Positions 3,018 to 25,092 of a stretch of 64,000 bases of DNA are shown piece after piece. This DNA comes from Amoeboaphelidium protococcarum X5. Lineage: Eukaryota > Fungi > Aphelidiomycota. The position numbers were made by a program, and so were the translations under genes. The notes under the pieces were generated by a model that saw nothing but the letters and a program-made list of their open reading frames with translations, made no database searches and was not told the DNA's origin. How positions within the stretch are numbered: the stretch's first letter is position 1; every line of letters begins with the position of its first letter. Where the stretch lies: the NCBI GenBank assembly GCA_023515725.1, contig JALDTO010000098.1, positions 1,452,164 to 1,516,163 on the forward strand, given 5' to 3'.

Positions 3018-3248
3018 GTTCTTTACAATTGGCGTTGGCTTTATATATCGGAGAAAGAACTATTAATTTTTATCAGTAGTCTGTGTGAATGTTGCCATTT
3101 ATGAAAATTGCTTTTATATGGTTGCATAAGATCACTTTTGCCGGTATAATTCTAATTCTTTAATCACCAAGATTCTCGCCTTCAAAAATTAGCGTGGGAA
3201 CAACTCTATTGGCGTTGTGATAAGAAGAAGAAGATAATTCATTTTATA

Positions 3249-3461
3249 GAGCGTATTCAGTGTTCAAACGCTCTTGGCCCATCGAAGCGGCCTGTCCTAG
3301 ATGCAAAGGCAATTGCTTGCATGCAAAAAGCCTTGTCGTACAACTTTTCCAAAAGTTCTCCCTTGCTACAGAACTACTGTAATTACCTAGCGCATGCCCG
3401 TGTCACCCGTTCGAGGCCTGGATGCCTAACCTTAGACTGAGCGATCGCTCAACTTCAGGCA
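3249..3461 (-). ncRNA. Candidate structured non-coding RNA A (family unknown)
   Basis: GC-richer intergenic island with several inverted repeats and a long closing helix. A-C mismatches on + become G-U pairs on the minus strand. Confidence 0.4.
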
Positions 3462-3618
3462 AACACGTCGCGTGACTTCTTTTAAAAAAGTTATATCAAT
3501 TGAATGATGAGATAAAAAATAGTTCAAGCTCAACAGTATGATCTATTATGATTACACTATACTTCATCTCTGACAATCTGATATTAGTATAATTTATAAA
3601 CTCGACTGAGAGCGCAAT

Positions 3619-4389
3619 TCAGTCAATTTCCATCTCGTTGAGTGCCTTCTTGACGCGTTGAAGAGTTAGTGATTTATTCATAAACTCGCAATCGAGAACG
3701 ACGCGTTTTATGAGGACCATCTACTTGACTGAACCGCATTTGATCCACAACAGTCCATTCATACCAACAGCACACTCAAATGCAACGCGTTTCCCCAATT
3801 CGAATAACACAGTACTTATCAGACATTACTACTATTGATACACAGCGGGAAGATTCTTGGACTTGAGCATGGTGGAATTGAAAAGCCGCCGAGCATAGTT
3901 GCAGCTAATCTATATAGTGAGACCATCTTACAACGCGCCATATCCAGCAGACTTACCATCTTCATTCACACAAGACAACTCACATTCAATGTCAGCCCGT
4001 ACAACAGCCGCTACACGCGCATATACCAAATCTCCATTCTTCAAATTTGGTCTATTCCTCCGTGTGGCATTCTCAAAAGCCAGGAAAGGCAATAATCCAC
4101 ACACAGCTCCACCATAATCAATGCGATACAACTCAAGCTCCCCTATTTTACCACATACAACACCAAGTATAGAATCACCGACAGCGGGACTGTAAAATTT
4201 CTAATCAGTCTCCACCCAGAATTTATCATTAGCATGGATCAATAATCCGCTTTAAGTAAACTGCACAAATTCCTATTCCATTTCTGACACTCGATCTTCC
4301 TCCTCCATTACTTTCAATCCCATTCCAATAGTAATCTCATTCTAACTATCAATCTACTCATTCAGTATACCACCAGCTAAGCGAAACAT
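3619..4389 (-). CDS. RRP40: Exosome component RRP40/EXOSC3, 256 aa
   Basis: LAFENATRRNRPNLKNGDLVYARV, ELSCV, FECAVGMNGLLWIK; continuous frame under table 6. Confidence 0.95.
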
Positions 4390-4893
4390 TATTATAAACT
4401 TTCGCGTTCTCTCTTAGTTTTGTCAAGTCGCTTCCTTTTCGTAGAAATTCTTGATCTATTTTTAAACGTTTGAAGTTCGTGGCGAATTACAGTTCGTTTC
4501 AGTAAAATGTCCGATCTCGGAAAAGTGTTTTGGGCACAAAAAATAATGACGAAGTTTTAAGCACGATACTTCCCTACAACAGATAGTATTAGAACTCGTA
4601 ATGCGAAGCATACGTGTAATTTGAACAATTATAAGTAACTTATGTGACGTCTGTTTAGATAATGCCGCAAAGTTCTCTATTTCATTCTCCAGTGATGGAA
4701 AGTGCCAATTTCAAAGCCATCGATTTTAGATTTAAGTAATCAAGTGATGGATTATAGTAATAAGAATACTTTTCCTATATATTATGTAGTTCTTGACTTT
4801 AGAAATTTTCAAACAGTGCCAAGTAATGAAATTCAATTTCATCGTTACTAAAAGCGGCTAGCAAACTCCAATTACTGACTTGTTGAAAAGGCC

Positions 4894-4900
4894 TATAAAA
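4894..4900 (+). promoter_or_regulatory. TATA box upstream of the Fanzor ORF
   Basis: TATAAAA in GCC-TATAAAA-GCG context, 70 bp upstream of ATG 4964, followed by a pyrimidine-rich leader. Confidence 0.45.
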
Positions 4901-4963
4901 GCGCCAGACAGTTCACTATTTCTTCTTCCTCTTTCTTATCTAACTTCTCATAGATAAGAAGAT

Positions 4964-7279
4964 ATGGCAAAGAAAGTAACACGTAAATGCAAACTAAATA
5001 CTGTCTTGAATCTTAGCGATGGTGATAAAGAGAGATTGATACCACAGATTCGACTGAGCTCAGTGCACCTCACCTTTGCATCCCGTCTGATCTATCTCAG
5101 TCTTAATGTATGGAATGAAGCCGGCAAGGCACTACCTGAGCTATCTCATTAGCAGTATTTCGCGTCAATGCTGGAGTATCTTTGCAACTCTGCGTTTCAT
5201 CGTGACAATGAACACACACGAATACTGGCTGAAACAATCGCTCCTGAAGTGCGATAGAGATTGAGGCACGAAAGCCTGATTGGTCCAAATCCTAACCTGT
5301 ACGTGTTTCAAGCGCGTAAGATTATTTAAGCTATCACCTGGCATCTGACTGAAACTATATGGGTCTACTAGAAGAAGGTGATTAAAGCTTAAATGGAGGC
5401 CTTTAATGTAAAAGGCCGAAGGCTTACCGTGTTTCTATAGCTGCTCAACTCTTTGCTGACTGAAGAAGCTGTTAACACGATGGAACACTTTGGGGGCGAG
5501 TACTTGGAGATTAATCCCGCGACTCAGATACATTTGCCTCCTGATTACGATGCTGGTGAAGATGAGGAGACAATTGCGCAATAAGATGCTGCTATTAAGG
5601 ACGAGTTGCTGCAATTGTAATAAGTTGAAGAAGTTCGGCACTTGGTCTCAATGCATCGTCACCATTTATTGGATATTGTCACCACTTCTTTTAAAGACAG
5701 AGCTCCAAGAAGGAGATACAGTAAAAGAAAAGCATAATCTCCTAGTCAGCTGCATGGACTCATCGGTTTCAAGCGATAGAAATCGGGTAAGATGAAGTAG
5801 CGTGATACCCATCAAACATACATGCCATCAAGAGCACACCATGCATTTCAGAATTAGGAGGGCTAGAAAGTTTTGGTCCAATATCTGATGTATTTGCGTT
5901 AAACTCTCAAGGAGCTAGGCTTGCCATCATTCAAGATTTTCCCTACTGGTACCGATGTTCCGCGCCACATCTGCTTTGACAATAAAGTTTTGGCTCAGTG
6001 GGGATTTGAACAGTATCGCCTGGGCAATCAGTTGGGGGAGGAGTCGAAAGAGGAGGAGGATCAACGGTAATGTATCCTAAGGCTTAAAGTTTTGGGTCTT
6101 TAACAGCGGGTGGCTCAATCTAAAAACGTCAGTGTCAGTATCACCTCTGATGGTTTTGCGTGCTCCGTGTCTGTTTCAGATTAAGGTGGGAAAGCGTATG
6201 CAAATGAAGCTTCAGACCTGCAGAGAAAAGCACGAAGCATTGACGTGTCTCAAGTAATTGTTGGGGCTTTTGCTTTGGAAAACTGTCGGAATCTCCAACA
6301 AAGATTAGATGGCTCTCGATTGATTGGCGTAGACCCTGGTAAGAAGAACGTACTGGTGTGGGGCGACGACGCGGACGTCGATGGTGCAATTACGCTAAAA
6401 GAAGCCAAGAAGGAGCTAAAAGAAACGGGCCACATATCTGCTGGATACTGGTAACGTCTTGCATTGACTACAGAGTCTGAAGCCCATCTGTTGCATATCA
6501 AACCAACTGAAATCACGCTGATGGAGTAAGATATGGCCTAATCAAACACTTGCCAGTAGTATCTCGATGTTTACATCAGATATTTTGAGGACGTCTATGC
6601 CTTCTACTCAAGATCATTCCATCGTAATTGGAGATTCCGACGATTTTGCGCGACCAAGTCTGCGTTTGGTAAAGTCATCAACATGATGTATGGCAGACCA
6701 AAGCCACCAGTGCCTAAAATCAACGATCGGCGCCGAGGTAAAGCTGCAAAGAAGAGGAAACGCGAACTGCGTAAATCTAATGGCAAGTTTTCACCTCCAG
6801 ATAAGCCTCCGGTAATTGCGCTTGGTGACGCTGGTGTGAAGCACGTGCGTGGTAATCCTCCTGTTCCGGTGAGAAAATTCGCGTTTGAATTCAGTCGTCG
6901 GGCATTGGTAGTTATAACGCCGGAGTTCCACACTAGCAAGCAGCACTCATTATGTCATGCAGATCTTCAATGGGAGCATGAAGTGGTGATGAGGTGCGGA
7001 CACAAGAAGGCAAAGAAGATACTGCCTGGTCGTCGCCGGGCTTAAACTGTCTGCATCAAAGCTGATGGTCCAGAAATCCTATCGTACGAATGTCCTGATC
7101 GTTTTAACCGAAGAGTCCAATCAAGATTTGGAGTTTGCCCAAACTGCCAAAACACTGGATGTGACGTCTTTGTAGATCGGGACGTTAATGCTTACAGGAG
7201 TATGGCTCAAATAGTCCGCCATTACGCGATGCATGGTAGCAGACCTTAATGGAATTGCCGCGCCGAAAGGCGCGCCTGA
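4964..7279 (+). CDS. Fanzor1 (TnpB-derived eukaryotic RNA-guided endonuclease), intact, 771 aa
   Basis: Single TGA-free frame joining ORFs 4964, 6245 and 6683. Motifs: SITSDGFACSV, RuvC-I IGVDPGKKN (D at 6332), VIALGDA, RuvC-II VVITPEFHTSK (E at 6923), Zn finger HSLC...CPNC, RuvC-III DRDVNA (D at 7181), C-terminal GSRP. Confidence 0.9.
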
Positions 7280-7438
7280 TATATACAGTAATGTTTGTCG
7301 GACAAACCGATGAAATAGACTGTACTCCGATTGAAATCAAACCTCGTTCCACTAATCAAAGAAACAATTTTGACCAGTACACAGTCAGGAACTTTATGCA
7401 AAACAGCGGAAGGAAATCAAGTCAATATCTGGGCGCGT
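7260..7438 (+). ncRNA. Putative omega-RNA scaffold of the intact Fanzor
   Basis: GCGCC-GAAA-GGCGC hairpin at 7260-7273. Closing helix 7270-7282 with 7425-7438 encloses hairpins at 7284-7324 and about 7368-7390. It overlaps the ORF 3' end, as TnpB/Fanzor omega-RNAs do. Confidence 0.55.
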
Positions 7439-7820
7439 ATTTAAACTATTCCTAAGAATCAATCTGCCGTAGACCTAACTTCAAGATATACGTAATTAAT
7501 GCACATTTCACAGTCTCATCGCATCGTGTCAGCAAACTTATAATACTATGGTTTTAAAAGAGATCGTTGTGTTCAAAGCATTAATTACAAAGAATTCATT
7601 GATAATTATTAAAATTCATACGTGAATCTTATTTAAAGCCTTGAAAGGAAACGCGCCGAGAGAATTTGTGTCGAATGGAACTGAATGAAGTCTTTCCTCT
7701 CTCTTTATCGTTTCCCTTTATTTCGTGTCGAAGAATCTCCGTTCTGCTTACTAAATTTACAATCAATTCTGTCATTAGTCGTAGTGCACCTGAATATATT
7801 GTATAAGAACAGATTAAGTT

Positions 7821-10800
7821 ATGCCGTGTATTTTAAAGATTAAAGTGGTTGCAGCCAGAGATCTTCCCGTGATGGATAAGAGCAGTGATAACACGGACAG
7901 TTATGTGGAGATTAGACTTGCCGCTCATTAGTAAGGCTAGAGTAACGGGCCTGCTCCTAATTTGCCTCTTACCTAAGGAAATGCCAATAGTGGCTATAAT
8001 AACAATTCTGGTGGTCAGTATTTCAATCAAACTGGTGGTAACAATTAGTCTCAAGCTGGAGATGGAATGGTCAATAGTCATGGTCAACATGTGAATAATT
8101 TCAGTGGTCATGGATATAACAGTAATGGTAATAATCTTCCTAGTAATACTATGAATGTCGCATCATCAAGTGATATTTTGAGAACATCTATTCAGTGGAA
8201 GACGTTGAATCCAATTTGGAATGAAGATTTTAGGATAGAGTGCTCAGATGATGCTGAAGTGTAAGATGAAGTTTTGGAATTCAAGGTTCTAGATTATGAT
8301 AATTACTCTGCCAATGACAGCATTGGTGTGGTTTACATTGATCTTAGTCCACTGATTACTTTGGAGAATAAGATATCAGAGAGTGATGTACTAAGTAAGT
8401 CCACAGATAAACAATCATTGGGTAATTTGATCAGTGGATGGTTCCCCATCTATGACACTATACGTGGTAGTAGAGGTGAGTTGAATCTTTAAATTAGGAT
8501 TGAGTATTTTGGCGACACTAATCCATTTAAAGACAGTAGTGCCGGTGTATTGATTTTCAGTGGTGGTGGAATTCCGGAGGGATATAGAATACAGGAGGTA
8601 CAAGGTCTTGTTACATCCATCGTGTGTATGGATGATCCCGAGTATCATTGGGCAGATTCGTTCAGATCGCCGCGTATTAGTAATGAGGCCAGGCAGAAAC
8701 TGCTGTGCCGAATGTGTGGCTAATTGCGAAGATTCATTGGGAGGGAGGCGCTGGAGTTGAAAGGTAACGCCATAATCGGGTACAAGTAGTATTTTGATTT
8801 TGAGAATGAAGAATCTGTTATAACTGGCCGTGTAATTGGTACTTGTGTTACTCTCGTTCCCGATGATAGTGATGATGAAGATGCCGATGCTGATGAAGAT
8901 GAAAGTTTTCAGTATCTTGATAGTCCTGGCTCTGACGGCAATCCTTATGACGCGTCATTCAGTTAAAGTGGTCCTGGTGGCGATGCTGATCAGTCCGCAT
9001 AGAGAGATGGCAAATTGGTCAAAAGTCCGTCTGATGACAATAAGTAGTAGTAGCAGTAGGGAGACTTGTTTGTTAAAACTTCAACGAATGCGCTGTTACC
9101 TTCGTCATCTTTGTCTAAACGGCCCGTTAGATTCATCAACAATGATGACGATGTTGTGATAATGACCCTGAATGATCTTTCTACTTAGTTTATTAAAAAT
9201 ATTGGTGGAATTGTATCAGCGAAGTCTGTCAAGCTTTTTGATGAGAATACTGATGAAGACGAGGATGAGCTCAGAGATGCCTGGTGGGATGAGCTGAGGG
9301 AGGAGATTGAGACGCACGCGAAAGCTCTGAATTGTCAATTCGTTCTTGGATATGAGGAATCTGTGACCATATGTGATGATTTGTGTGTACTGAGTGTAAT
9401 GGGAACAGCTGTTAATTTGAGATTAGATGCAGATGCGTCTCCTCCTCCTGCCACTTACTTTGGCGAAAACAATGATAACTTGTCGCAGGATCCATCTGGT
9501 ACTGGTCAAGGAAATCAAGGTAGAGGAGATTTGGCAGAGAGTGGCACAAGTACGAACATTAGGTAAAAGTCTCGCCAGCTATCACGGTTAATGTCAATTC
9601 AGGAATCTTCGCCACTAAATTCTCGGCAATCTTCAACGTTATAAAGAAATATCAATAACGCCTCAGATGTTGACTCTTCTCACTATCGTTCACCTATGCT
9701 CAAGGATGGTGGACTTCCTACATCTGTATTGCAGTCAAGTGGTCCGTATCTGTCAGAATGCTAAGCTTGTCACATTCCATATTCTAAGCGGAGATTACCA
9801 TTCCAAGTTACTTTGACAAAGTGTATGATTTGTAAACGGAGATATGTGCCAGAAATTTTGATCACGAATATTGAGGTTCCTGCTGATTTACTCACTGTAG
9901 GAGATTCTCAGCTCATTGAGGCTCATATATGCAGAAGTAAAAAGAGTAAGGATGGTGAATCCAATGCCAGTGCTATAAGCGATGTTCTTCCCTTTATTGA
10001 TTATGAAATTCATCGTCAGTTGTTGATGAAGTTGCGTATTGCTGGTCTCAACTCTATTTTTGGTCTGAAGGTGAAGTTGTGCATTAGTGAGACGTCAATT
10101 TTGGCACTGGCTACGGGAACTGCTTTCTTCCTGGCTGCTCTTCCCTCATTGCCTCCTCTGAGACTGAGATCCAACATGGAGGTGATTGACGCGTCAGATT
10201 AGTAGTTTGTCTCGTTGTAGAATAGAATTATGGAACTCAGCTCGTCTAACAAGTCACGGATCGAGATGGCGAGATAGGATATGCTGGTGAGACGGCGTCA
10301 GTTAGTTAATAGTAGTGGCAATGCAGTTGGTGGAGCGCTATCCTCCATAACTGAAGACCCGTCAACAACGATGATGGCGAGTCCATCTACCATGAATTCC
10401 TACTCTGTAACTGGCACATCTGATGTTAATTCTAACCTATAAACTCCTATTAGAAGTCGGAAAATGTCTGCTAATCTATCCAGAGAATAGGAGCTCTTGT
10501 CTGACAATGAATCTCTGAGTTCATCTGATTCTGATGATCAGCCAAGTACTAATGTGATTATACAGATTGATGATGATATGGATGAAGATCTAGTTGGTCT
10601 CTTGTTAGATCCCATCTATGATTCTGGAGATCGCACTGTTGAAAGATGTAATGTATCACGTTGCTAGTTTTCTTATTGTAGTGAGATGTAATTTTTGACT
10701 CAGTTCTTGACAAGTAATAGTTGCGATAGAGCATCATCATCATTATCTTATTCCGACTATCCTGTATCTGGCAGTAATATACTCAAAGTGGAGAAAGACA

Positions 10801-11912
10801 ATTCGACTATTGTTTATGCAGCTGACTAAAGATCAATGAATATTATAAAGTAGATTTCTTTAGGTTCTGTAGAGTTACGATAAAATAGGCAGCTCACAGA
10901 TATTGTCAACTCAGTGTACATGGAGCTAAAAGATCAGGTCAAAGTTTTGTATAAATTTGCTATAATCAGCGACATTAACGTGAATCTCACAATGTTGAAG
11001 AAGGATGCGATAGACATTGTTTTGAGCTGCTATGTTGTTGGTCTATATTCCATATCTATGTCTTATTATGAGGCGCTGTAAGAGAAAGTGAGGTTGTCAC
11101 TTTTGTCTGATGATGAAAAGAACAACCATAATGCTGATAATTGTGGCATGTCTAACCCAACATTCAATGATATACCTCTTGGAAAGAGCACCACCGTTTA
11201 GACTCTGAATCCTTTGATGCGATACTCATTGTTCTAACCAGTCACTTAAGAATAGCCCATTATCACGCCACTGTCTCACGTTCCTGGCCGGATCATTACA
11301 TCGCACATTGACAGGATATGTATCTGTCTGATTAATGAGGATTTAAATGTTCATATGCGTGGCGGTCAGAGTGGATTTGGATTTCATTTTGAGAATTATT
11401 CACAGAATCAGAATACTGCCACATCTTTAGGTGGTGGGAGGTAAAATAGTTTAAGTGGAGCGTTGGCGTTTCCTAAAAAATTGCTTCTTCTGCCCTTGCT
11501 TGGTTAGTCGTCCTCTAATGCTGTGGTTCGGCAAGAGGATGACTTGAATGTTTTTATTGGATAATCTGCCGCTGATATTTTCGCAACAGTAAGTGCACAC
11601 TGTACCAGTCTAGACGGAGATGCTGTATGTTCGTTCAAAATGGAGGTGTGTGCTGTTAAAGAGGAGGGAAATGGTAATCGGGCTTACTCTTTGATTTGCA
11701 TTTCAGGCGATGTTGTCACTTTGGCGGATTAGAACCATTCTCCACATCGCTTAGCTGATGATTCTGTTAAGCCTTCAGATGGACGCAATGAAAATGGCTT
11801 GAAAGAGTCTGTTGGTGTCAAGGCTGAAGATATAAAGAATAACTCTGCCTTTGTGGTTAGTCTTTGTCAAGTTGACATGATAAACGCAATGTGGTCGACG
11901 TTTGCGCAATGA
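7821..11912 (+). CDS. C2CD5: C2 domain-containing protein 5 (C2CD5/KIAA0528-like), 1363 aa
   Basis: MPCILKIKVVAARDLPVMD, ISGWFPIYDTIRGSRGEL, DDPEYHWADSFRSPRISNEARQ, RDAWWDELREEI, CHIPY, LPFIDYEIHRQLLMKL. Confidence 0.9.
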
Positions 11913-22467: not shown

Positions 22468-24471
22468 TCAAATGTTGAGAAAATGCCTGGGAAATTATCC
22501 ATTCATCATCATCATATGAAGTCCAATATACAAAATATTTGCTGCGGCATTAGTGTCGCCATTCCTTTGATGATCTATATTTCCAATACAGACAAATTAA
22601 TCATGAGGACGTGGATATCTCGTCCCAATGCAAAAACATAGACTACACCTCTGACCGGAGTATGGCTTAGGAGTCAGAGCAACTATGGCGTACTTGTTTA
22701 GAAGTCTTCTGAATTCTACCAGAGGTGGCAACCTTTTTCTCCCAAAACCTACAAATTCGTGATCTGCAGCGGCGCCAAAAAAACACAACTTACTTGTCTC
22801 TTGTCGCCTCGTCTAGAACGTGCACCCCAAAGTCTGTCTTTACTACTTCCAGCAACTAGTCGCGTCTCCTCAGCCAAGATTGAAATCGTGTCTCTCGCCT
22901 TTCCCTTTGAAGAACCAAGTCTACTGCAGCAAGAGTTTGACTCAAATAGGCCTAACAGTATTACACTATCGCTCCAAATTTACCGTCCGTCTCGTTACAC
23001 CGGCCGGTAAACTCAACACTGGTGGTGATGCTAGTGCAACATCATGTTACCCAAGATTGCGGACTCTCATAACTCAAAGCTCTCTACGCTGATTCAACTC
23101 ATTGAACTGATCCAATGGTGTCTAATCCGCCTTCTAATACTCAAAGCCAGCAAGCGCCACTGCCACCCGTATTACAGGATCAATAGCCAAATACTTTGTC
23201 CCCCAGGCTTAAGGCAAGCGTGTGAAGTCAGGATTGTCCAAACGGTTGGGCTACAATGCTGGCTATAGTTCTTCTTGAGGAAGCTCGACGCCATTCTCAT
23301 CCATTAAATCTTCATTACCATCCTCAAACTTCTACAACATGTTATCACCAGCGGCAATAATCTCCTCAATGAGAAACTATTGCAATTAACCTTCACCAAT
23401 GACTTCTCTGTGATTGCCAGCGCCGATGATAAAACTGACCGAGTGCATGTCAGTAACCATATGACCGGTGAATTTGGCCTAGAAGCTTCTAGTGTAAAAA
23501 ACTTCGGATGCCCACCCACATCTCCGCAACACCGGTTCCTCATCACATCTTCTGAACATTGCGTCCGTCAGCTTGATGTGATGAGGTGCGACATTAAATT
23601 GCGGCAGTAGAAAAGGTAATGAGACAGTCTAAGCACTTTCGTGCGCCAAGTCTTCAACATGCCACAACATGCAATAGGCTAGCACGATATACTAGTCAAA
23701 GTTGTCAGTTGTTACACGGCGTAAGGCACCAAAATCATTGTACATTTATCTTAGCAACCAACGAGCCTTCTGCTATATACTCAAAACACGTTATCGCAGT
23801 TACTACTTTTATGCCAAAGGAGTATCAGCCGGGACGCAGCGGTATAGAAACTGCCAGCTTACATTTACATTCTCATGCTTTTGTAGCAAACTAACCATCT
23901 CCTTTACAAGCTTATTTCGGTCTAGAGTTTCATACTAGCACTCCACGCGCAGCAAGTAGCCTACAAAGCATGATAAAATCTTGAGAAAATTTGCCTGGAC
24001 ATGATTGTGCAGATGTGTGAAGTACTCAAATGCGATTTACGGCAAAAAATGAGCCATCATATCGTTGTGCGGAATTTCAAGCTAAGATGGTATAATGACG
24101 CGTTGTTCGAACTCTCTCAACTTGGTATTTACATCAAGATAATCCGGACCAGTTGTATTATAATCTAGGCCATTATCAATAGGACTACCTCTGAAAGGAC
24201 GCATCATTGTTTCAATCGAATTTTGACTCAAATGTAGAAACTGAGTATCCAACTATACTACACCTTCACCATGTTGGAATATCTGCAACATTTAATTATA
24301 AGCATCAGACTATTACAATTTGGATACCAAATAATATTTGATGAACAAAGACGATACTACTCTAACCACTATGGAATCTTTGTGCAATCTATTCAGCCTC
24401 TGACGCAACTCATCACCGCCGATCCAAAAGTCATTAAAGCTCTCTTTGATACAAACGAAGTTGTCGGCCAT
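22468..24471 (-). pseudogene. Second Fanzor1, decayed (in-frame TGA, two frameshifts, RuvC-II E replaced by K)
   Basis: MADNFVCIKES..., HNHVQANF, LLPQFNVAPHHIKL, FTGHMVTDMHSVSF, YLAIDPV, RRETRFQSW, VVFFGAA, VALTPKPYSGQRCSLC, NGDTNAAANIL. TGA at 23074-23076; frameshifts near 22970 and at the A7 run near 22780. Confidence 0.8.
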
Positions 24472-25092
24472 GCTATATTAGATTACTATCTTAATGGAGC
24501 TATCAATGGCTTATAATGTAGAAGACATAGATAAAGAAAAATGACGATAAGGAAGTTAAGAGTCAAGCAAATTTCTGAGCTGGTTCATACTTCGGCGTCC
24601 AGTGAAGTTACCATGACAACGGATGTAATGACCGTCGCATTATAGCGCTATGACTAATCCTACCTCCTATTCCTATTCTATTAACGAATGTGTTGCTGCT
24701 TTTAGCAAAATTACGCGTTTAAACAATTTATATAAATAAACCAGCCTTCTTCAACCAGGGTTTTGACAACGACAGCATTCTCCAGCAGAATTTTCATGCA
24801 TTCGGAGAAATGCGTTTTTTGGTGCATTATATATTCCATCTATATAGATCAAGATAATGTGTTTCAAAATCTTGTTTTTTCATAAATATAAAATTCATAC
24901 TTGATTATATATGATAGTGTAGTCTTGTAAGTTGTTGCGGGTTAAAAAACGGTTATTACTTAGAATAACTAAAGTCGAAATTACGCCCTGCCCGGTGCCT
25001 GATTATCTAATACACTTCAAGGCTAAATTTAACAATGTGGATTGACCGCTCTTACTTTATTCTTGGTTAAGTCAACACGTAATCAAAAAAAT

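Follow-up and report, generated by a model that had tools for sequence, protein, structure and literature searches.

A divergent Fanzor1 transposon of the SPu-1 type in the aphelid Amoeboaphelidium protococcarum

The closest described counterpart of the locus analysed here is SPu-1 of Spizellomyces punctatus, the element of SpuFz1 (PDB 8GKH, 9CEU-9CEZ). It combines one Fanzor1 ORF with inverted repeats of ~30 bp, a TA duplication and a 75-nt right-end scaffold that includes the TA, is present in many copies, many of them intact, and is preceded by conserved bases which complete the TAM, the CA in front of the left inverted repeat matching the TAM measured for SpuFz1, CATA (PMC10432273). Location of the 3' TSD within the omega-RNA scaffold is a general rule (PMC10432273, PMC13565253). 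Other Fanzor1 proteins of solved structure include PpFz1 of Parasitella parasitica (9CF0/9CF1) and GtFz1 of Guillardia theta (9CER), the latter with an AT-rich TAM, TTAAN (PMC10432273), and with loci reported to be devoid of inverted repeats. Tc1/mariner (DD34E) and pogo-type Fanzor1 transposons possess a TA duplication and CAGT-type ends (Bao and Jurka 2013, PMC3627910), and Fanzor2 as well as the TnpB proteins of IS607 and IS200/IS605 display a RuvC-zinc finger core and the logic of a right-end guide RNA. What Fanzors do biologically has yet to be settled (PMC10432273), and a 2026 review regards the benefit of OMEGA nucleases for DDE transposons as unclear (PMC13565253).

The window, a stretch of 64,000 nucleotides of the A. 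protococcarum genome, harbours a new, divergent representative of the SPu-1 type of Fanzor1 transposon. All the SPu-1 traits listed above recur in it, the scaffold and the TAM as predictions, and SpuFz1 is its best structural match (Z up to 19.5). Nevertheless, the two proteins are only 13-15% identical, with no match at the sequence level, and differ in length (771 aa in the aphelid versus about 638 aa) and in the TAM (predicted ATTA versus measured CATA); in addition, the aphelid protein has a His for the first zinc Cys, carries a Cys-rich insert and is written in a code in which TAA and TAG specify Gln. The aphelid scaffold overlaps the stop codon, which lies 43 nt from the right end, no ORF-less ghost copies like those of SPu-1 were seen in the aphelid family, and the aphelid genome contains Tc1 elements with matching TIRs, whereas none were found for SPu-1. 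PpFz1 and GtFz1 share the whole-length fold (Z 15-18.6) but only 11-16% identity. Unlike the Tc1/mariner and pogo-type Fanzor1 transposons, the window family has no transposase of its own, although the same species has a sister family in which a DDE_1 transposase lies next to the Fanzor. Compared with Fanzor2 and TnpB, the structural match is much weaker (Z about 9.5-10), the REC is larger, the ends are of the TIR/TSD type, and neither a serine recombinase nor a Y1 transposase is present in the element.

A. protococcarum also offers two controls that SPu-1 lacked, namely Tc1 elements that have much the same ends but no Fanzor, and in which the flank bias described below is absent, and a sister Fanzor with different ends and its own transposase but the same ATTA flank; filtering after insertion versus steered insertion becomes testable in this species. 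Furthermore, the species is the source of an enzyme that was recently active and is divergent (about 14% identical to Fanzors of solved structure), with a predicted TAM, a compact predicted scaffold of 75 nt and an additional Cys-rich module.

Boundaries, copies and the empty site

The element and its surroundings are as follows.

4490..7322, + strand: whole non-autonomous Fanzor1 DNA transposon, 2833 bp, with ends common to 10 full-length copies
4490..4515, + strand: left terminal inverted repeat, Tc1-like, beginning CAGT; 22/26 bases identical to the TIR of the Tc1 DD34E element L053 of the same genome
7297..7322, - strand: right terminal inverted repeat, doubling as predicted RNA stem 2; 16/26 identical to the left TIR and 20/26 to the L053 Tc1 TIR
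7323..7324, + strand: 3' TA target-site duplication
3619..4389, - strand: RRP40, host neighbour outside the element (PF21262, E 3e-26)
7821..11912, + strand: C2CD5, host neighbour outside the element (C2 and PF23025 matches)

A sequence-only reading had delimited a stand-alone nuclease gene at 4894-7460, without clear terminal repeats. Repeat finding on the window alone indeed yielded no usable terminal repeats, but alignment of the genomic copies set the ends at 4490 and 7322; the inverted ends had been overlooked because they are imperfect, with 16 of 26 bases identical, an imperfection that would reflect the shaping of the right TIR by RNA pairing. Far from standing alone, the gene belongs to one of ten full-length copies, 98-99% identical, found by the genome search along with a copy carrying an internal duplication, another that is interrupted, and several older pieces. 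The other young copies measure 2843-2847 bp, and the window copy has a 12-bp deletion in its left arm. In eight of the ten, the 771-aa ORF is intact and encodes all three catalytic residues. Alignment of the copies showed the flanking DNA to be unique to each, at unrelated loci and with TA on both sides; the duplicated TA is found at 19/19 left and 16/17 right junctions. The earlier reading was correct in that the element (4490-7322) contains no transposase gene and in its naming of the neighbours, both of which were recognized by Pfam. A borrowed Fanzor tail was looked for as the left end of the element and not found.

The homeologous RRP40-C2CD5 interval (L057) aligns on both sides of the insertion at 88-90% and shows no vestige of the element; its intergenic stretch measures 589 bp, as compared to 596 bp in the window minus the element. 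Contigs of the sequencing run also contain the empty form and lend support to the right junction, and the DNA beyond 7324 is host intergenic sequence that aligns to the empty homeolog. Window positions 3241-3520, outside the transposon, are likewise present in the homeolog, at 88%. The ends, the TSD and an empty site could all be defined by the genome search proposed for the locus. The assembly of a second strain contains several intact copies of another subfamily (B), one of them at a site common to both strains, and all members of the database cluster that represents the young subfamily come from the window's assembly. The element is likely a recently expanded, non-autonomous cut-and-paste transposon of SPu-1 architecture. 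A recent viral source is unsupported, with scans of viral and metagenomic sequences yielding only distant relatives (21-25% identity). Two unrelated runs (X5 and X6), one of them a hot-spring metagenome, contain near-identical fragments of the element at low depth; these may represent the parasite itself or carry-over.

The Fanzor1 protein and its genetic code

The coding region comprises the following features.

4894..4901, + strand: TATA-like box TATAAAAG, recognized by sequence, of putative function, inside the element and 70 nt before the ATG
4964..7279, + strand: Fanzor1 ORF, 771 aa in table 6, no intron needed, equal to database protein P0032
6146..6154, + strand: SDG/TDG motif upstream of RuvC-I, SDG at residue 395, placed by the TDG/SDG alignment column
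6332..6334, + strand: RuvC-I Asp457 in DPG (GVDPG), invariant in 15 homologues
6923..6925, + strand: RuvC-II Glu654, at the Ealt position six residues ahead of the zinc finger, conserved in every intact copy
6944..7147, + strand: zinc-finger (TNB/NUC) module H661/C664/C725/C728 (H661-x2-C664, C725-x2-C728)
7181..7183, + strand: RuvC-III Asp740 in RD (DRD), placed by sequence motif and alignment

The frame of 771 codons, the SDG motif, the D/E/D triad and the zinc finger with its Cys/His-containing insert are all where the sequence-only reading had placed them, as is the TATA box, which is kept in six of seven left arms of subfamilies A and B, whereas elsewhere the arm has diverged far more. 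Searches of Pfam (with stop-free pieces and the full table-6 protein), NCBIfam and PDB sequences gave no significant match for the ORF, so that the proposed HMM check returned nothing, whereas the structural check bore out the Fanzor1 assignment. An AlphaFold2 model (pLDDT 83.7, pTM 0.82) retrieved only Fanzor1 structures among its top seven Foldseek matches (SpuFz1, PpFz1 and GtFz1; E 7e-16 to 3e-10), with VIA Z scores of 15.3-19.5 over 480-555 residues against 12.4 for the next protein; Fanzor2 (9B0L, Z 9.5) and TnpB (8H1J, Z 10.2) matched more weakly, over 300-320 residues. Judged by this predicted fold, the protein is a Fanzor1, with an enlarged REC/WED part in addition to RuvC and NUC, distinct from Fanzor2 and TnpB. 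Relatives at 21-25% identity carry a Cas12f1-like TNB domain, and in a quick tree the A. protococcarum Fanzor families form one clade (SH-aLRT 99).

The published motif of Fanzors, D-x(125-275)-[TS][TS]-x2-C4 zinc finger-x(5-50)-RD (Bao and Jurka 2013, PMC3627910), is recognizable throughout: 200 residues separate D457 from T657-S658, and the RD lies ten residues past C728. The RuvC-I DPG motif described in PMC10711439 is present, its D and G being invariant, and the rearranged-Glu fingerprint of the same study is found as E654 followed, after six residues, by H661. The first zinc Cys is replaced by His in the window Fanzor and two sister families, and is a Cys in family 2. The zinc finger holds a beta-rich insert of ~55 aa with C678, H680, C697 and C710; all six cysteines of the module (C664, C678, C697, C710, C725 and C728) are invariant among six clade members and H680 is not, being Asp in subfamily B. 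To judge by these residues, the Cys-rich insert is possibly a second metal site. Between subfamilies A and B, dN/dS is 0.16 at dS 0.42, indicating that the protein has been held under selection while mobile.

The UAR-to-Gln code of A. protococcarum has been published (PMC5304391), and its use in the element, proposed from the sequence, holds up well. The ORF contains 15 TAA and 9 TAG codons read as Gln, ends in TGA and has no internal TGA; 22 of these 24 codons face a Gln codon in an 86%-identical subfamily B copy, seven times CAA or CAG. Adaptation to the host code is likewise borne out, with TAR accounting for 48% of Gln codons in the window ORF and 49-51% in those of the sister families, as compared to 56% in genes of the host; in a standard-code relative from a metagenome the share is 0%. 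Such recoding is to be expected in A. protococcarum and adds little beyond evidence of long residence. The suggestion that the gene is invisible to mining is valid for raw standard-code translation and for profile searches but not for NCBI nr, which holds the exact 771-aa protein (P0032) and its copies, translated in the host code and labelled hypothetical proteins. Our literature search found no paper joining Fanzors with Amoeboaphelidium or aphelids; the part of the Saito 2023 supplement available to us lists two A. occidentale proteins only, and the window Fanzor may have been catalogued earlier.

Predicted omega-RNA and the ATTA flank

Three further features flank or span the ends.

7250..7324, + strand: predicted omega-RNA scaffold, 75 nt, two hairpins (fold z = -4.7, covariation)
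7325..7339, + strand: predicted locus-specific guide, unique flank at each copy, its length borrowed from SpuFz1 (14-15 nt)
4486..4489, + strand: left flank ATTA, predicted TAM from comparison of left junctions, its last two bases being the 5' TA duplication

The segment 7250-7324 folds at -26.7 kcal/mol. Stem 1 (7257-7275, with a GNRA-type loop) overlaps the last codons of the ORF, and in stem 2 (7284-7324) positions 7284-7289 pair with the last four bases of the element and the duplicated TA; the terminal TA is paired within the scaffold in all three families. Across subfamilies A and B and two families ~40% identical at the protein level, all 13 counted pairs are kept and five show two-sided changes, a count that involves three lineages only and a structure derived from the same sequences. 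The covariance model recovers the fold behind other Fanzor loci of the genome, and each of its strong matches falls on a Fanzor ORF belonging to these families; a search of Rfam yielded nothing significant for the element. The right end is thus predicted to encode an omega-RNA scaffold, with the 3' TSD inside it, followed by a variable 3' guide. An RNA extending to 7460 was ruled out because conservation among the copies stops at 7324.

The diverged Fanzor families of the window's assembly are known by their coordinates, and relatives of them were read in the assembly of the second strain. Family 2 is a 4.55-kb element (L072 2268-6817 and L073 in the second strain; C207, ~293.4-297.2 kb, in the window's own genome), in which a pogo-like DDE_1 transposase with an unbroken frame of 391 aa (288 aa in the annotation) lies upstream of a 759-aa Fanzor1; it has the ends CTGTA/TACAG and the left flank ATTA, and by its gene content is a candidate autonomous Fanzor transposon. 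Family 3 (802 aa; L070 and L071, second strain) has a right end with omega-RNA and TA; no left inverted repeat was found for it at these two loci, and its left part has short motifs in common with the metagenomic standard-code relative (L074).

ATTA precedes the element at 17 of 19 left junctions and GTTA at the other two (binomial p 2e-13 against the AT-rich background, in which AT stands in front of only 11-14% of TA sites); one of the GTTA copies reads ATTA at the orthologous site of the second strain, leaving 18 independent sites. In the young family, with copies diverged by <1%, the count is 12/12. The bias is one-sided, the mirror motif occurring at 0/16 right junctions (Fisher 4e-8 versus the left), and although the comparison sets are small (eight Tc1 ends and two pogo family junctions), ATTA is found at 0/8 ends of Fanzor-less Tc1 elements with similar TIRs (Fisher 2e-5) and at 2/2 junctions of the 42%-identical family 2, with its different ends and pogo-like transposase. 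Since the flank is shared across two transposase types and absent from Fanzor-less Tc1 elements, these two controls within one species tie it to the nuclease rather than to the transposase. Given that in SPu-1 the conserved CA before the left inverted repeat equals the measured TAM CATA (PMC10432273), the TAM of the window Fanzor is, by analogy, predicted to be ATTA.

Filtering after insertion, competing explanations and related loci

Starting from the observed Tc1-like ends, TA duplication, spread, purifying selection, covarying RNA fold and one-sided flank, we propose the following cycle. The element would probably be moved into TA sites by a Tc1 DD34E transposase supplied in trans. A transcript running from the internal TATA promoter through the right end would, as in SpuFz1, very likely provide the 75-nt scaffold and ~15 nt of flank as the guide. 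The resulting RNP is likely to cut ATTA directly followed by the guide, that is, the empty or precisely excised site, and would spare the filled site because TGTA stands where ATTA was. Repair from the element-bearing chromatid or homologue would then, with a slightly better than even chance, restore or copy the element, such that TAM-bearing insertions persist and others are lost, which would leave the one-sided ATTA flank.

Excision of the Tc1 type usually leaves a footprint, by which TAM and guide would be separated, and this counts against the proposal, as does a dN/dS near 1 among young copies, on few changes. Among the 17 DDE_3 loci, the six Tc1 elements inspected had no unbroken transposase, their genes being frameshifted, truncated or possibly spliced. 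ATTA followed by the guide of the window copy occurs nowhere in the assembly, the filled site reads TGTA, and the homeolog has diverged at this spot. The right flank TA-CAG-TA, which has the form of a Tc1 excision footprint, is found in 2/17 copies (L006 and L013) as compared to 0.36% of TA sites, a difference noticed post hoc (p about 0.002), and fits true cut-and-paste excision.

Alternatively, the flank bias could stem from the transposase or from asymmetric ends, with the Fanzor TAM having adapted to match, as for TnpA and TnpB in IS200/IS605. In bacterial IS, the TAM as a rule matches the target of the transposon (PMC13565253). Moreover, ends that agree at just 16 of 26 positions could assemble into an asymmetric transpososome. 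However, Tc1 elements with nearly the same TIR lack ATTA, the flank is common to two unrelated end types, and the mirror motif is missing on the right, whereas Tc1/mariner target preferences are normally palindromic; we consider this explanation rather unlikely.

A bias arising at insertion would be expected if the Fanzor protein or RNP bound ATTA and sent the DDE transposase there in a fixed orientation. Consistent with such steering, ATTA is nearly absolute even in the <1% diverged copies and accompanies Fanzor across two transposase systems, and the two TA-CAG-TA right flanks resemble re-entry into an excision footprint. Yet our literature search yielded no account of a Fanzor physically linked to a DDE transposase, the nuclease site is preserved, which sets it apart from RNA-guided integration systems, ORF-less SPu-1 ghost elements have the same kind of flank (PMC10432273), and retention of TAM-bearing insertions accounts for the same data. 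Steering appears improbable. It is likewise quite improbable that Fanzor1, beyond protecting filled sites, guides DDE transposases of two types, Tc1 and pogo, to its TAM in one fixed orientation and perhaps returns them to excision footprints; if true, this would amount to a eukaryotic nuclease-assisted targeted-integration system. The present data do not separate either explanation from filtering after insertion.

Whereas the non-autonomous element foreseen by the sequence-only reading stands, its other option, a domesticated stand-alone programmable nuclease serving the host, has hardly any chance of being right: an ORF without breaks, Gln codon usage close to that of the host and the purifying selection seen between subfamilies would suit it, but ten near-identical, recent copies, broken ones among them, are located at unrelated loci with TIR and TSD, a different subfamily has expanded in the second strain, and a domesticated gene at the window locus is refuted by its multiple copies, retained ends and empty homeolog.

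Several further loci deserve mention. A broken, unrelated Fanzor-like gene lies in the window at 22468-24750 (- strand), with DPV, CxxC and DTNAA pieces spread over different frames, a Glu missing from its usual position and no tblastn match to the window Fanzor family at E 0.01. A DDE_1 transposase match (G000 C264:384976-385485) is located ~0.8 kb to the right of the copy with the internal duplication (L011/L013). The metagenomic relative (L074 435-3340) is a 939-aa protein in the standard code with a TATA box and a hairpin after the stop; its closing stem TATACAG/CTGTATA resembles that of the aphelid RNA but is longer, and the fold alone is not significant.

About nine weaker RNA-model matches of 67-70 nt, without a Fanzor ORF match, may be old relics or ghost-like loci. 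The coordinates of these weaker omega-RNA matches include the following.

G000 C211:212633, C264:1907128, C146:664177, C98:638203, C154:430284, C244:442560, C264:102000 and C200:106530: weaker omega-RNA matches, given as coordinates only

The 5' half (L052 3633-4524) and 3' half (L053 4915-5700) of a Tc1 element, which provide the closest TIR, are separated by 6.4 kb, and their TIRs point outward. After the 5' half at L052 comes a decayed family-2-like Fanzor tail with an RNA fold, and the weak RNA match read at this locus corresponds to that tail, adjoining the Tc1 fragment.
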